From NCBI GenBank assembly GCA_023334545.1, contig JAADVB010000126.1, forward strand, positions 1-52,275: a stretch of DNA of 52,275 nt. Reading direction: 5' to 3'. The DNA comes from Salisapilia sapeloensis CBS 127946. Lineage: Eukaryota > Protista > Oomycota. The notes under the pieces are model-generated. The model saw nothing but the letters and a program-made list of their open reading frames with translations, made no database searches and had not been told where the DNA came from. This document shows positions 2,886 to 8,423 of this stretch, one piece after another (within the stretch, counting starts at the first letter, position 1; each line of letters opens with the position of its first letter). The position numbers and the translations under genes were made by a program.

Positions 2886-3752
2886 ATGAACTTCGACTCT
2901 TCGACTCAAATACAAGATGTCCATTGGGATGGTATAACATCCACCTCTAATCGGTGTATGTCAACCAACTGAATGCGTTTCCAAGCAGATTTCATTGGAA
3001 TGGTAAATAGCCACGTGCTTGAGACTGGGAAGGATGCAAACCAGCAAAATGAAGAGGACTCGTCCGCCAGTTTAAAAGATGGGACTGAAAGGGTGAACGC
3101 GTCTAGCCTTGCATCATCTTCCACTGGTCCAAGCAAGAAGACTGTATCTTATTATGAAGACGATGACTCAGATGACGAAGGCCCTCCTCCGCCTAGTGAA
3201 GCGGAAATTCTTGCTGCCAAGATGGCAGCATGTGAAGCAGAGTGGAAAGTATTGGACCCACATGATAGAGGACAGTTGACTCTTGAGGAGTTTCAGTCAT
3301 TCTTAACGAGCTGTGGAACTCATCAATCGATCACTGACTTGGAACGATTTTTTGAGCTGTACGGGAACTACTCGTAAGTACGTTCATCTTAACGTTTAGT
3401 GAGCCACAAGTAACCGTCGTTTGATAGCATTGAAGACGAAGACGAAGAGGACGAGCTTACCATATCAAAAAGCCAATGGCTGTCATTTCGATACGAGTAT
3501 GCGCTGCAAGATTGCCGCGAGGATGAAGAAAGAGAAGAACGAGGAGCGTTAGGTAGTTTTCCAGAGTCTCTCGCTTTCGACAATGATCGTCTAAACGATA
3601 ACAACACCGACTTAAACGGAACGATCCAACCACCTGACGCGGAAGTGGCTTCGATTCATAAAGATAGCATAAGCCTCCAGAGTGAGACCACTGTAGAAAT
3701 GACCACCGACACAAACCTTCATGACTTCAGCACCGATGGCGTAGACAATTAG
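2886..3752 (+). CDS. Acidic EF-hand-like protein (spliced, about 251-259 aa)
   Basis: ATG at 2886. Intron 1 ends at AG 2988, with donor at 2932 or 2956 (both phase 1). Intron 2 is 3374-3427 (GTAAGT..TAG, 54 nt) and restores frame into EDEDEEDEL...; stop TAG 3750-3752. Degenerate EF loop DPHDRGQLTLEEF. Confidence 0.65.
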
Positions 3753-3931
3753 GAGGCACAAACACGATCAACATGATTCTTGTTGCCAAATTCGCTTCAT
3801 TCATTATATGACAAGCCTGTCGCTAGCAAAGGGGCACGAGCATGTATGCAAACGCTAGTCCAGTTCGATCAACTTGCCTCCTTGCGCCTTCGACTACGCC
3901 CTACAGTCCATTCGAACACACTAAACAAAGT

Positions 3932-6655
3932 TTAAAAGGCCATGTGGAACGAACTTGGTGGCGTGATCTGCGCCACTTTGCAACGATCGGCCTTGGAATA
4001 CCGTTTCTTGATCACCGCGAGCTCCGACGTCGGTGCCAGTGAAAACAAAGTCTGCAGCTCACCCATGCACTCCTTCAAGTCACGCCAGGTCAACTGCGTC
4101 GCATCCGCCAGTTCCCTCGTCATCGGGTACCCTTCGACCGTATACATGGCCATGGACAGGCAGCAAGTGGCGACGACAGACGGCCTGTAACGTAGGAACT
4201 GGTGCTCTTGTAGCGTCAGCTCTAGTAGATACTGCGCCAGCATCGGCGTCTTCTTCTGCATCGGAGGGATCATACGCTCAAAAACATGCAAGAGGTCGAG
4301 CGCGGTCGGAACCGTCAACGAGAACTGGAGCGTCGTCAACAGTTTCTCTTCCATCTGCAGCACTTCACTCGACGTATAGACATTGTCGGCACACATAGCC
4401 AAGTCTTCCACACCAATGTACGAGACATCTTCGCATTTGGATGCGACGTGAAGACACGTTGCGCCGAGTAGCTGGAACTGATTCTTACGCACGAGTTCTT
4501 TATCGAGGAACCTGTCGGTGTAGTTCACAGCCAAGAACGCCGTGCGTAAACACATTTCAAAGACATCGACGACTTCAATGAGCCAATCGACAAGCATCGA
4601 TCGATGCGACGGACGCAACGTCCGCTGTCGATGGAGGTACTTTGTCTCTTTCCAATTCTCTGCTTCTGCCTGTCGCAAGAAAGCATGGTACAACTCAACA
4701 TGCTCGGGGGTAGAGCATCCTTCTCGCATACGATAGACGGCATCGCCCATCTTGATTTTCGGAGACAGTCGCGGCATTTCAGGAGACACATCTTGGAAAT
4801 ACGGATGACGCAGTGCTTGTTCAGCAGAGATACGTTCTTCCGGATTGTACAAAAGCAGTTGCTTCATGAGATCCAGACCTTGCGGAGATATGGTAGGAAA
4901 GAGTCGATGGAAGGGTTTTTGACGCCAATTCGGGAATTTAAAGTCATAATTCGGAAGTGACGTGAAGCCAGGCCAGGACTCCGAGTTAGGTGTCGACAAT
5001 TTGCTGAAGATCTGGAAGAGCTGGTCGATCTCCGAGATACCAGTGAACAATGGACGACCTTGCGCCATCTCGGCAAAGATACAACCAGCGCTCCACACGT
5101 CCACGGCACTTGAGTACCCTCGCACACCCATAAGGATCTCAGGTGGACGGTACCACAGCGTCACCACTTCCATCGTGTACGTCCGACGAGGGATCCCAGT
5201 GGCCCTCACGAGTGCAAAGTCGGACAGTTGGAGCTGCGCATCTTCCAGCGTATCTGGATGTTCCGTCTCAACGAGCAAGTGCTTAGGCTTGAGATTTCGA
5301 TGCAAGACACCTCGGCGATGGCAGTAGGCCATGGCATCTAGCAATTGGTGCAGTAGCCGACGAATGACAGGTTCCGGAAGCACTCGACCACCATTTGGAT
5401 CTCCCGTCGGGTTAATCAGCTCATGCAGCGTCTTGTCGACGTACGGGAAGAAGACGTGGAGCTCATCATTGGCCAAGCTCACGAGTTCTAGACTCGCGAT
5501 GTGGTCGTGTCGCATGCCTTGAAGGACTGCGAGTTCACGCAGCATGTAGTACGGGACACCTTCGCCTTTAGGAAAGACGCGTGCTTTTTTCATGGCTAAA
5601 ATCTTGCCGGAAGATCTTTGTCGGCACTTGAAACACGTTCCCTCGGTGCCTTTGTTCTTGACACCAAGGTTTTGGAAGTTGAGCCAATTGACACTTCCAT
5701 CTTGTTGGAGGTCTGATAGAGCACGACATAAGGACTTTCGATTCGTGAGTTCACGCCAACGCTTAGAAACACAAGCAAGATTTAACAGGTCTTCGGAGGA
5801 AACGAGAAAGGAAAAGATGTGCAGGATCATGTCCACTGGCTGCATATCGAAATGCTCCGAAGTGGGGATGGGAGACGATGTCGGCACGTCATTCGACGAT
5901 GTTGAGGCGATAACTGTTGATTCCAACTCCTCGTCTTCTTGTGCAGCCGGAGATGCGATGACGATTTCACGACGCACGAGTTTGTTGGCGCGATGCTCGA
6001 CGGCACGGTCGGACGGTTCGATGGAGAAGCCACCTTCATCGCCAGCGTTTGGCTCTTGGCTGTTGAGCACATGCTCTCGAGCGTAGACCGTCGAGGCTTC
6101 ATCCGTCGACATGTCTTCGTCAATTGTATCGTCTGTTTGGGTCTTGGAAGCACTTCGTTTTCGTTTGCCATTGCCTAGAGCAGACATTTAGCAACTATTG
6201 TCAAGTGGAAGAGTGTACAAGATGCTGGAAATACCTTTTGGAATACGAGAGACGGATGCTGTGGAAGAGGAAGAAGTGGAGCGAAGAACGAGAGGAGGAG
6301 GAGGTTTCTGCGCCTCTTTCGACATTGGAGCTTCCTCCACATGCATTTGAGCTCGAGTAGGCTTTTGTTCCACTACTCTGGTATCATCCGCCTCGACTCG
6401 AGGACTGGAGCCGACGGAATTATCGAGCGACCAATTGGATTCGGCATTGGAAGCAGTCGACGGAGACCTCGTCGGCCCTGCCCGAGGTGTGTGACCTCCC
6501 ATGGCGACTAGTATCGGGTTATCCCCTTCGTTTTTATTGGCCAGAGCTACCGAAATGGAGGTTGACACACCGGAATCGCTGGAAGAAGGCGATGGTGATG
6601 GTGCTCCAACAGCACGTCGTTTTCGAGCAGGTGTATCCTGTTGCTTTCGATTCAT
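3932..6655 (-). CDS. F-box + CDK1/2-like pseudokinase + cyclin (A/B-type) fusion protein, 887 aa
   Basis: ORF 6188-6655 joins ORF 3932-6187 through a 60-nt GT-AG intron (6175-6234, phase 1). F-box QPVDMILHIFSFL..DLLNLACVSKRWREL. Kinase motifs GTEG, AMKK, EGVPYYMLRE, HRNLKPKH, SDFA, YTMEVVTLWYRPPE. Cyclin box HRSMLVDWLIEV...QLLGATCLHVASKCED plus a C-terminal cyclin fold. Confidence 0.92.
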
Positions 6656-7036
6656 ACCAGTAAGAACGTCGTCTGGCTAATCTTAATAACAACGTGACTC
6701 CGAAGCTTATCACGGTCCAGTGTGGATGATTTCAGGACACAATACAAATCGTACGAAAAGGCAGGAACAAGTACTAGCTACAAGTCTCTTTCTCGCCTAC
6801 TAGTCTATCAGAGATTGATATACAAGATTAGACACACGTAGGAGGTAAAAGGGAAGAGGTAGACGTACTCTTTGTTGCTAAAATCGAACGTACTTTCCTC
6901 CTTGTACTGTATCGATGTCGAATGGCTTTTTCTTCCGGTTCGACTCGGAAGGGCTATTCTGTAGAAAGATATCATCCTTTTGACTTGTGCATTGTATGGG
7001 GGAAAAGCCATTTGGTACTCAAGTACTTAGTACGGG

Positions 7037-8423
7037 ATGGACGAGTCTGTGCGTCGATGTGAAGTCTGTGGTGGACATGGAAAGGAGCTATTGATTAATC
7101 CGCATAGGATATGCAGACATTGTGCTCGAGAGACGAAACGATTCTTTGATCCAGACACGAATGTCTATACCCGAGATGATGGGTTCATCGACATCTCACC
7201 GAAAGTCGATGGAGGCGTCCTAAAGAAAGTGATCAAGGAAGGGAAGGCTGGAGCGAAGCACATTGAGGAAGGATGTCCTACTCGTGTGCAGTACATTGGT
7301 CGGCTCATGGACGGGTCTATTTTTGACACAACGAGAGACGAGGTCGATGGCAAGCACGTCGGCGGTACGGACGATCCGTTCGAGTTCCATTTGGGACGAG
7401 GAAAAGTGATTGAAGGATGGGACATTGGTGTCGCTACGATGCAGCCTGGAGAAATCTCTCGCTTCATCATATCGCCTCAATACGCCTACGGATCGCAAGG
7501 CTTCGCTCCTAAAGTATGAAGTATCGATCGTATCGAGAAGAGATTAATACTTATGATGCTCTAGGTGGAACCAGATGAGACGCTGGACTTTGAGATTGAG
7601 CTCGAGTCCTTTAAAGTAAGCCATTCCATCTTGTACTTATAATCAGTCTAGTAACGAGTATGTGTAGGATCCACTGCCAAAGTTCCCGACGCAAGAGGAG
7701 ATCGCTATGAGCCGTAAGCAACAAGCAGAGGAAGACCGGAGGATGCTAGAGGAGAATCCACCTCCAACCGTCGATGAACGCATCACAAATGCAACGAAGG
7801 AGAAAGAAAGAGGAAACACACATGTCGCGCAAAAAGAATATGAAGAAGCCCAAAAGTGCTACGACTCGGGCTTTGTCAACATCTTCTACTCGAAGGAAGA
7901 GTGGGAGAACCTCTTATCTGATGAAGAGCGTAGTCGAGTGAATCAGATCAAACTCGTCTTGTACTTGAATCGAGCATTATGTAAGCTAAAGCTTGGTAAG
8001 ATCGATGAAGCCGAGTGGGATGCCGACCAAGCCGTCACTTTGGACAAGGACAATAGCAAAGGACAGTTCCGAAAGGGTCTCGTCTTTCTAGAGAAACTCA
8101 AGCGAGAGCTAGGTAAGGAAGAGCGAAAGGAGTTTTGGATTCTAGACAAGGGCTTCCAGTACGCCCAGACGGCAGAAGCTTGTTTCACCAAGACAGGGGA
8201 ACTCACCTCCGCTTCCGATGCAAAGCTTCTGCGTGCTCAGCAAGATCTGAAGCGTCAACTAGCTCTTCTCCAAAAGTGTAAGAACAAGTACAAGCAACAG
8301 GAGAAGGAATTGTACAAGGAAAAGATCTTTGATCGGATGGAAAGAGCGAATCGAATGAAGCAAAAGAAGGAGCAACAGCATGCGCAAGAGCATGAATTCG
8401 ACGATATGCCGCCACTTGAATGA
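7037..8423 (+). CDS. FKBP-type peptidyl-prolyl isomerase with TPR domain (large immunophilin / Hsp90 co-chaperone-like), 427 aa
   Basis: Introns 7514-7564 (51 nt) and 7616-7667 (52 nt). FKBP motifs VQYIGRLMDGSIFDTTR, FEFHLGRGKVIEGWD, YAYG, TLDFEIEL. TPR motifs KERGN, LYLNRALC, KGQFRKG. Confidence 0.9.

Follow-up and report, generated by a model that had tools for sequence, protein, structure and literature searches.

The window analysed here, i.e., the whole stretch of 52,275 nucleotides making up positions 1 to 52,275 (forward strand) of contig JAADVB010000126.1 from the oomycete Salisapilia sapeloensis CBS 127946, carries on its minus strand a gene whose single product joins an F-box, a domain resembling the cyclin-dependent kinase (CDK) CDK2, and a cyclin. 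The gene belongs to a family of kinase-cyclin fusions already known from oomycetes and ciliates. The kinase appears to be catalytically dead throughout this family, and the F-box appears to be ancestral to it. We describe the locus and its transcript, the three domains and their predicted arrangement, and the history of the family, and we then weigh the proposal that the protein is a substrate receptor of a Skp1-cullin-F-box (SCF) ubiquitin ligase.

Gene structure and transcript

An unbroken minus-strand open reading frame (ORF) of 751 codons (3932..6187) already contains the F-box, the kinase and the cyclin. An in-frame ORF of 155 codons (6188..6655), whose product matched no Pfam family, lies upstream of it, with a single TAA (6188-6190) between the two. 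Four RNA data sets bear on how these frames are connected. Three runs from the same organism (X1, X3 and X4) each yielded one contig of 3013-3024 nt with 100% identity to the locus, with 3′ ends at 3773-3796 and 5′ ends about 20-35 nt past 6900. Both 6175-6234 and 6805-6868 are skipped in all three; because the contigs lack these introns, they derive from RNA. In the fourth run (X5), from a relative about 96% identical, the same 60-nt splice is present. The 60-nt intron takes out the TAA, and the upstream and 751-codon ORFs are thus joined in frame. The resulting coding sequence, join(6655..6235, 6174..3932) on the minus strand, is 2664 nt long and encodes 887 residues; inspection of the transcript sequence by eye revealed no ATG 5′ of 6655. 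Relative to the X5 organism, 33 of the 35 listed coding differences are synonymous, and the two replacements are at codon 480, within the kinase-cyclin linker, and at codon 496, two codons beyond it.

Could neighbouring F-box, kinase and cyclin genes simply have been misread as one? We consider the probability of this negligible, since the three domains share one uninterrupted 751-codon ORF, spliced RNA contigs cover the whole of that ORF in four runs, and the fusion was confirmed in Phytophthora by RT-PCR (PMC3019232). A merging of adjacent genes in the gene model is therefore refuted. Nor does the domain architecture reflect chance, because the E-values of the domain matches span 1e-12 to 1e-83, and there are orthologues with 59-75% identity.

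The original prediction, made from the DNA letters and a list of ORFs, had claimed an F-box, a CDK-like kinase and a cyclin, in that order, in one polypeptide of 887 residues encoded by a spliced ORF. The Pfam matches and the single spliced mRNA bear out the order and the linkage, the RNA contigs and a frame check agree with the length, and the predicted domain coordinates differ by no more than a few tens of bases from the Pfam placements (Table 1). Two checks that it had proposed gave the expected answers: the F-box matched its hidden Markov model (HMM) above the Pfam threshold, and spliced contigs spanning all three domains revealed a single mRNA instead of one message for the kinase and another for the cyclin.

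Table 1. Features of the fusion gene and of its product (window coordinates)
Feature	Position	Strand	Basis or remark
Fusion-gene mRNA	~3773..6920	minus	One transcript: N-terminal extension, F-box, pseudokinase and cyclin
Intron in 5′ untranslated region, 64 nt, GT..AG	6805..6868	minus	Joint 6804/6869, three RNA runs
Coding exon 1	6235..6655	minus	ATG 6653-6655; encodes the 140-residue N-terminus
Coding intron, 60 nt, GT..AG	6175..6234	minus	Joint in all four RNA runs
Coding exon 2	3932..6174	minus	Stop codon 3932-3934
F-box (PVDMILHIFSFL...CVSKRW...)	5723..5839	minus	Pfam; residues 117-155 of the 751-residue ORF
CDK2-like pseudokinase domain	4766..5683	minus	phmmer against human CDK2, and Foldseek
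Pkinase (3e-51)	4796-5653	minus	Pfam; residues 179-464 of the 751-residue ORF
Glycine loop GTEG, Tyr15 to Glu	5639..5650	minus	CDK2 alignment; near-invariant in family
HRNLKPKH (CDK2: HRDLKPQN), Asp127 to Asn, Asn132 to His	5279..5302	minus	Near-invariant in family
DFA for DFG; Mg-binding Asp retained	5213..5221	minus	CDK2 alignment
T-loop TYTMEVV, Thr160 equivalent retained	5162..5182	minus	CDK2 alignment and family alignment
Flexible kinase-cyclin linker	4706..4780	minus	pLDDT ~51; mean column identity 0.17
Cyclin A-like double cyclin fold	3956..4684	minus	Pfam and cyclin matches
Cyclin_N (2.3e-37)	4316-4684	minus	Pfam; residues 502-624 of the 751-residue ORF
HRSMLVDWL, counterpart of the cyclin A hydrophobic-patch helix MRAILVDWL	4580..4606	minus	Cyclin A2 alignment
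Cyclin_C (2.4e-21)	3956-4306	minus	Pfam; residues 628-744 of the 751-residue ORF

The kinase half

Human CDK2 residues 2-297 align end to end with the kinase half (phmmer, E=2.6e-83, 44% identity), so that each functional residue of CDK2 can be compared with its counterpart. In the glycine loop, NKGTEG, Gly11 is replaced by Asn and Tyr15 by Glu, while Thr14 and Gly16 are unchanged. The ribose-binding Asp86 is a Thr. The HRD motif reads HRN, i.e., the catalytic base Asp127 is missing; the metal-binding Asn132, a ligand of Mg, is a His; and DFG is changed to DFA, with Asp145 retained. The complete CDK catalytic set is thus broken by the substitutions G11N, Y15E, D127N, N132H and G147A. By the usual criteria the kinase half would be classed as a pseudokinase, and from these substitutions we infer that it has lost activity, in agreement with the dead kinase originally predicted.

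Other elements have been kept. Lys33 is retained in the motif AMKK, and Arg50 and Glu51 are retained in the counterpart of the PSTAIRE helix, which reads PYYMLRE. The T-loop, RTYTMEVVTLWYRPPE, is nearly unchanged relative to CDK2, including the Thr160 equivalent and the P+1 residues, and the equivalents of Arg50, Arg126 and Arg150, which clamp phospho-Thr160, are kept and invariant. With the Lys33-Glu51 pair and the three phospho-Thr160 arginines in place, the kinase half appears to be built to hold an active-like shape.

The cyclin half

The C-terminal 277 residues match the full length of cyclin A2 (3.7e-39); matches to cyclin B1 (3e-30), cyclin D1 (1.2e-20) and cyclin F (9cb3, 2.9e-20) are weaker. 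The cyclin A2 alignment takes in the N-terminal helix, which rests against the CDK in the complex of CDK2 with cyclin A. In this alignment, HRSMLVDWLIEV of the cyclin half is the counterpart of MRAILVDWLVEV in cyclin A2, and the anticipated A/B-type cyclin with a retained MRAIL-like helix is therefore present. Met210 of that helix is replaced by His. Among the residues that form the RxL groove, Ile213 is replaced by Met and Leu253 by Phe, and Leu214, Trp217, Glu220 and Gln254 are kept. The Lys of ASKCED and the Glu of QMEE form a CDK-contact pair conserved in the family; these are the equivalents of cyclin A Lys266 and Glu295, the conserved CDK contacts of the cyclin box.

Orthology with animal cyclin F was considered and rejected. 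The cyclin half is far closer to cyclins A2 and B1, and the name 'Cyclin-F' that UniRef gives to many orthologues looks to be derived from domain content.

The N-terminus and the F-box

The 140-residue N-terminus is rich in Ser, Pro and Ala, includes a basic cluster, RKRR, and a single full CDK consensus site, TPAR, and is probably disordered. No D-box, KEN box or RxL motif occurs in the N-terminal 250 residues. The X5 transcript has an in-frame 6-nt insertion (GGAAGA, + strand) at window 6262, in the serine-rich disordered N-terminus.

The F-box that follows was detected with both Pfam models, namely F-box-like (PF12937; E=4.4e-12, 46 bits against a cut-off of 24.3) and the older F-box model (PF00646; 1.2e-5, 25.4 bits against a cut-off of 20.5). 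It has the pattern P-x-[DE]-[ILM]-[IL]-x-x-I-F ... V-S-K-R-W, with the first Leu replaced by Gln. That is, the dipeptide at its start (window 5836-5841) is QP in all oomycete orthologues; it is the usual LP in many non-oomycete members. The top match in the PDB is the F-box of Skp2 (E=0.011), followed by those of other F-box proteins (up to about 1). At the level of sequence this likeness to Skp2 is weak, and gives no evidence of specific descent.

According to precomputed Pfam calls, F-box-like is present in all full-length oomycete members of the family and in many distant members. When ten distant members lacking an F-box call were rescanned, eight showed a sub-threshold F-box or F-box-like match (E=1e-4 to 0.7) immediately upstream of the kinase. 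An HMM was also built from the 80 residues that precede the kinase in 27 Pfam-positive members. This model matched 72 of the 76 other members (E<=1e-3) and none of 309 shuffled controls, with a score that is not necessarily all due to the F-box, as the 80-residue segment includes the short F-box-kinase linker and the first kinase residues. Because the rescans and the HMM both find the F-box in distant members, we conclude, from sequence comparison, that it is ancestral to the whole family.

Predicted structure

Residues 100-751 of the 751-residue ORF (652 residues) were modeled with AlphaFold2 from a 64-sequence alignment. The model is one compact body, with a mean predicted local distance difference test score (pLDDT) of 89.1 and a predicted template-modeling score (pTM) of 0.89; only the first six residues and the kinase-cyclin linker (pLDDT ~51) are of low confidence. 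For a three-domain chain of 652 residues, a pTM of 0.89 can be attained solely when the domains are confidently placed relative to one another. The F-box is modeled as three short helices (pLDDT 82-92), rigidly joined to the kinase.

In a Foldseek comparison with the PDB, all of the top 50 matches are CDK2 chains from cyclin-bound complexes, with template-modeling (TM) scores by target of 0.89-0.93 and root-mean-square deviations of about 2-3 A. The T-loop contains no helix in the AlphaFold2 model. These two features together indicate that the kinase is modeled in the cyclin-bound state. From this conformation and from the conservation pattern described below, we infer that the CDK-cyclin interface is canonical. 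The ESM Atlas model of an oomycete orthologue is closely similar (TM 0.94, 2.2 A over 637 residues), and two AlphaFold DB cluster representatives, Q231B8 and G0QSS3, match over the full length with TM scores of 0.83 and 0.79 at 22-23% identity; by their accession ranges, these would be proteins of Tetrahymena and Ichthyophthirius. The prediction of the protein alone thus gives the closed CDK-cyclin-like body that had been envisaged.

Distribution, conservation and history of the family

Homologues were sought among 5.8 billion proteins. Oomycete orthologues with the same Pfam set occur in every oomycete group sampled, namely in Lagenidium, Pythium, Phytophthora, Plasmopara, Bremia, Peronospora, Albugo, Aphanomyces, Saprolegnia and Achlya, at 57-75% identity over up to 100% of the length. 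More distant members (35-55% identity) come from brown algae, Tribonema, Chrysoparadoxa, Phaeothamnion, the labyrinthulid Hondaea and the dinoflagellate Durusdinium, and further ones from transcriptomes of the Marine Microbial Eukaryote Transcriptome Sequencing Project (MMETSP) and from many metagenomes. A search for the same three-domain order across stramenopiles, another of the checks proposed at the outset, thus succeeded in all oomycete groups sampled and in distant members. A second homologue search, started from the most distant named member (P0091), added no new named lineages and no ciliates.

The pseudokinase signature is nearly fixed. Across 99 aligned homologues, with identities as low as 35%, the motifs GTEG, A-x-K-[KR], PYYM[LM]RE, HRN[LI]KPKH, DFALVR, the T-loop Thr and WYRxPE are near-invariant. 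Invariant columns of the 64-sequence alignment include Gly81, Thr82, Glu83, Gly84, Arg118, Glu119, His197, Arg198, Asn199, Lys201, His204, Asp224, Phe225, Ala226, Arg229 and Thr239. Conservation peaks in two regions, namely the segment from beta3 to alphaC, through which CDKs chiefly bind cyclins, and cyclin helices alpha3-alpha5, and these peaks include the equivalents of cyclin A Lys266 and Glu295. Oomycetes show no variation in the MRAIL-type helix, which is well kept in ochrophytes, labyrinthulids and the dinoflagellate.

In a tree of kinase domains, 107 of 109 signature-bearing sequences fall on one side of the split from canonical CDKs (support 0.85). Eight sequences scored as lacking the signature lie inside the signature clade; seven of these are oomycete records whose gene models lack the HRN or DFA stretch, and the eighth is P0108. 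Since the signature-bearing kinases form essentially one clade, the sequences indicate that the inactivating changes arose once and have been held since.

Phytophthora also has diverged paralogues (P0027, P0030, P0033 and P0039), in which the glycine loop is CEGSEGE or CKGTEGV and the T-loop is QAYTDEV, with the same HRN and DFA changes; two have an F-box, and P0033 and P0039 have none. These paralogues fit the four copies reported from P. infestans, and the window holds one copy only. All named members except P0091 are from stramenopiles or alveolates. P0091, which has the F-box, the HRN signature and the cyclin, is filed under the chytrid Batrachochytrium salamandrivorans (BASA81_008581), and P0097 is 85% identical to it. 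This record may reflect contamination of the assembly, or the family may be more widely spread.

Relation to published work

Fusions of this kind were described in Phytophthora infestans, where four CDKs with C-terminal Cyclin_N and Cyclin_C domains were confirmed by RT-PCR (Judelson and Ah-Fong, BMC Genomics 2010, PMC3019232). Those authors noted an Asp-to-Asn change in subdomain VIb, proposed that the fusion proteins are inactive, and suggested the cyclin part as a possible regulator of protein stability; they identified relatives in other oomycetes as well as in Paramecium, Tetrahymena and Theileria, and detected none in diatoms, Plasmodium or Toxoplasma (PMC3019232). A preprint on the Stentor kinome added two more fusions, in which the GxGTYG motif is lost, and proposed that a cyclin is carried on a pseudokinase scaffold (10.1101/168187). 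The window protein shares with the P. infestans and Stentor proteins the placing of Cyclin_N and Cyclin_C behind a CDK-like kinase within one chain, and with those of P. infestans the same Asp-to-Asn change. Together with its single transcript and its orthology to oomycete members, these features place it in the family described in 2010.

An F-box or a role in SCF ligases is mentioned in neither report (the term F-box has 0 occurrences in PMC3019232), in contrast to our finding that the F-box is ancestral. In the literature searched, from which most subscription journals are outside coverage, no mention of an F-box or SCF function of the fusions was found, and five PITG gene identifiers were cited only in the 2010 paper, four of them merely as PSTAIRE-type CDK2-class kinases rather than as fusions. 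Database records do carry the F-box: GenBank titles for Achlya and Thraustotheca read 'cyclin-dependent kinase with F-box domain', and a Plasmopara record lists it.

The novelty of the architecture implied by the original prediction was therefore overstated, as the pseudo-CDK-cyclin fusion was published in 2010 and again in Stentor, and the F-box is present in database names. With the fusion and its Asp-to-Asn change in print for 15 years, the architecture is not new; the window gene is an orthologue in a known family and not a new kind of protein. Two elements appear to be new in print. One is that, judging from the alignments, both the F-box and the complete inactivating signature go back to the ancestor of the family and have hardly varied within it; the other is the confident modeling of the protein as a closed CDK-cyclin-like body.

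Neighbouring genes

The start of the fusion transcript lies about 120 nt from a divergent ORF on the plus strand (7037-8423), which looks like an FKBP plus tetratricopeptide repeat (TPR)-like protein. At the other end, a plus-strand ORF that looks like an EF-hand protein (2973-3377) is convergent with the 3′ end of the fusion gene.

Proposed function and alternatives

The only well-established role of an F-box is the binding of Skp1, and most F-box proteins are substrate receptors of SCF ligases in which the remainder of the chain holds the substrate. Because the remainder of the window protein is a dead CDK-cyclin with conserved partner surfaces, we favor the view that it is an SCF receptor with a pre-assembled, inactive CDK-cyclin as its substrate-binding domain, a proposal whose chances we put at about even. 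The CDK2-like and cyclin A-like halves would pack together as a permanent CDK-cyclin complex of active-like shape, which would be unable to transfer phosphate because the catalytic base and the metal-binding Asn are missing and Tyr15 is replaced by Glu. The F-box would bind Skp1, making the protein a substrate receptor, and the dead CDK-cyclin body would bind the substrate. Candidate sites for this purpose are the hydrophobic patch of the cyclin (for RxL motifs), the intact T-loop and P+1 platform (for S/T-P sites), the N-lobe of the CDK (for inhibitors of the CDK-inhibitor, or CKI, type) and the Cks site of the C-lobe.

A narrower form of this proposal, which we put forward tentatively, is that of a substrate trap. 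That is, across stramenopiles, alveolates and Rhizaria (SAR), the receptor may bind, but not turn over, RxL motifs together with S/T-P-x-K/R sites in the unphosphorylated state, or inhibitors of the CKI type, such that CDK targets or inhibitors are ubiquitylated according to their phosphorylation state. The combination of an intact T-loop platform with Asn at the position of the catalytic base might, speculatively, provide the geometry of such a trap.

Several points weigh against the SCF-receptor proposal. Foldseek compares single chains, and the evidence on the CDK-cyclin interface is indirect, namely the pTM, the cyclin-bound conformation of the kinase and the agreement with the ESM and AlphaFold DB models; the access of Skp1 to the F-box is presumed. 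The oomycete F-boxes have QP at the canonical LP position, and in other F-box proteins LP-to-AA mutations abolish Skp1 binding; some F-box proteins, moreover, do not form SCF ligases. Lys33, Glu51 and Asp145 are kept, which leaves room for nucleotide binding or trace activity, and HER3 likewise has HRN. In the most distant subfamilies (P0081-P0099), the MRAIL-type helix is degenerate and has lost its Trp (e.g., QRLKASQRIIEI), with the pseudokinase signature exactly kept, so that RxL docking may not be the universal function of the family. Finally, binding or activity data for any family member were not found in the literature searched.

Three other explanations must be set beside the SCF-receptor proposal. 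The protein might be a stoichiometric decoy, in which the dead CDK-cyclin soaks up regulators of CDKs (CKIs, Cks, Wee1/Cdc25, or the CDK-activating kinase, CAK) and the F-box serves mainly to destabilize the decoy or to tether it to a non-SCF Skp1 complex, not to hand over bound proteins for ubiquitylation. This would draw on the same conserved docking surfaces as the SCF receptor, it accords with the suggestion that the cyclin part regulates stability (PMC3019232), and the S/T-P sites and basic clusters of the N-terminus are typical of regulated cell-cycle proteins. However, the retention of the F-box throughout the history of the family and its rigid join to the kinase in the model correspond to the layout of a substrate receptor, and the N-terminal motifs sought, i.e., D-box, KEN and RxL, are absent from the first 250 residues; we regard the decoy as an unlikely, yet serious, contender. 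The protein might instead act mainly as a cyclin, its cyclin half binding and activating a separate, active CDK in trans, with the pseudokinase as a scaffold or, alternatively, an autoinhibitory plug; an idea of this kind was raised by the authors of the Stentor preprint (10.1101/168187). The CDK-contact residues of the cyclin are indeed intact. Three independent predictions nonetheless seat the cyclin on its own kinase with high confidence, and no part of the protein is more conserved than the alphaC segment that binds the cyclin, which indicates a permanent interface within the molecule that would shut out a second CDK; activation in trans is thus improbable.

That the protein is still an active, self-activated CDK with an unusual catalytic arrangement seems to us more improbable yet. 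It retains Lys33, Glu51, Asp145, Thr160 and the arginine triad for phospho-Thr, in an active-like fold. Against this, substitutions have removed the catalytic base, the Asn that binds the metal, the glycine of DFG, the one that opens the G-loop, and Asp86, a Glu occupies the site whose phosphorylation inhibits CDKs, and the same changes are near-invariant across the family.

Comparison with known systems

Animal cyclin F (FBXO1), the receptor of SCF-cyclin F, likewise has an F-box N-terminal to a cyclin fold whose patch could select substrates, and, as is predicted for the window protein, it does not activate a kinase. The two differ in that cyclin F has no kinase domain and pairs with no CDK, whereas the window protein has a whole CDK2-like domain between F-box and cyclin, predicted to be packed on the cyclin. 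As the cyclin half is nearer to cyclins A2 and B1 than to cyclin F, the resemblance is one of architecture and not of orthology, and the original description of the protein as a convergent analogue of cyclin F was a reasonable one.

The animal SCF-Skp2/Cks1/CDK2-cyclin A assembly is perhaps a nearer analogue; in humans it ubiquitylates p27, which its CDK-cyclin body helps to hold. A CDK2-cyclin A body inside an SCF substrate receptor is common to that assembly and, as proposed, to the window protein. The human assembly, however, consists of four separate chains with a leucine-rich repeat (LRR) domain and an active kinase, while the window protein is one chain with no LRR and a kinase predicted to be dead. 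PDB entry 8bya contains Skp2, cyclin A2 and CDK2, and is thus a precedent for a CDK-cyclin body acting in an SCF receptor.

The Tribbles pseudokinases hold substrates for the COP1 E3 ligase, for which they are adaptors. They share the dead kinase fold and, if the SCF-receptor proposal is correct, the task of holding substrates for a ubiquitin ligase; they differ in belonging to a CAMK-like group, in recruiting the ligase through a C-terminal peptide, and in having neither F-box nor cyclin. That a covalently linked cyclin and CDK can fold into a working complex is known from an engineered Cdc13-Cdc2 fusion in fission yeast (e.g., PMC4319789), although this fusion is artificial, has the order cyclin then CDK, is catalytically active and is without an F-box.

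Significance

The family joins two central devices of the cell cycle, namely CDK-cyclin recognition and SCF ubiquitylation, in one chain, and it has been left unstudied. The inactivating substitutions have stayed fixed in oomycetes, in brown and yellow-green algae, in labyrinthulids, in a dinoflagellate and, by published report and fold matches, in ciliates. Oomycetes include major pathogens of crops and fish, and animals and plants are without an F-box-pseudo-CDK-cyclin protein. If the SCF-receptor proposal is correct, the family would reveal the way in which much of eukaryotic diversity couples the recognition of CDK substrates or inhibitors to proteolysis, and would offer a natural substrate-trapping CDK-cyclin with which to find the partners of CDKs in these organisms. 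If the protein is indeed a substrate trap, it would follow a degradation logic complementary to that of the F-box proteins that read phosphodegrons, and would be a one-chain counterpart of Skp2-Cks1-CDK2-cyclin A.

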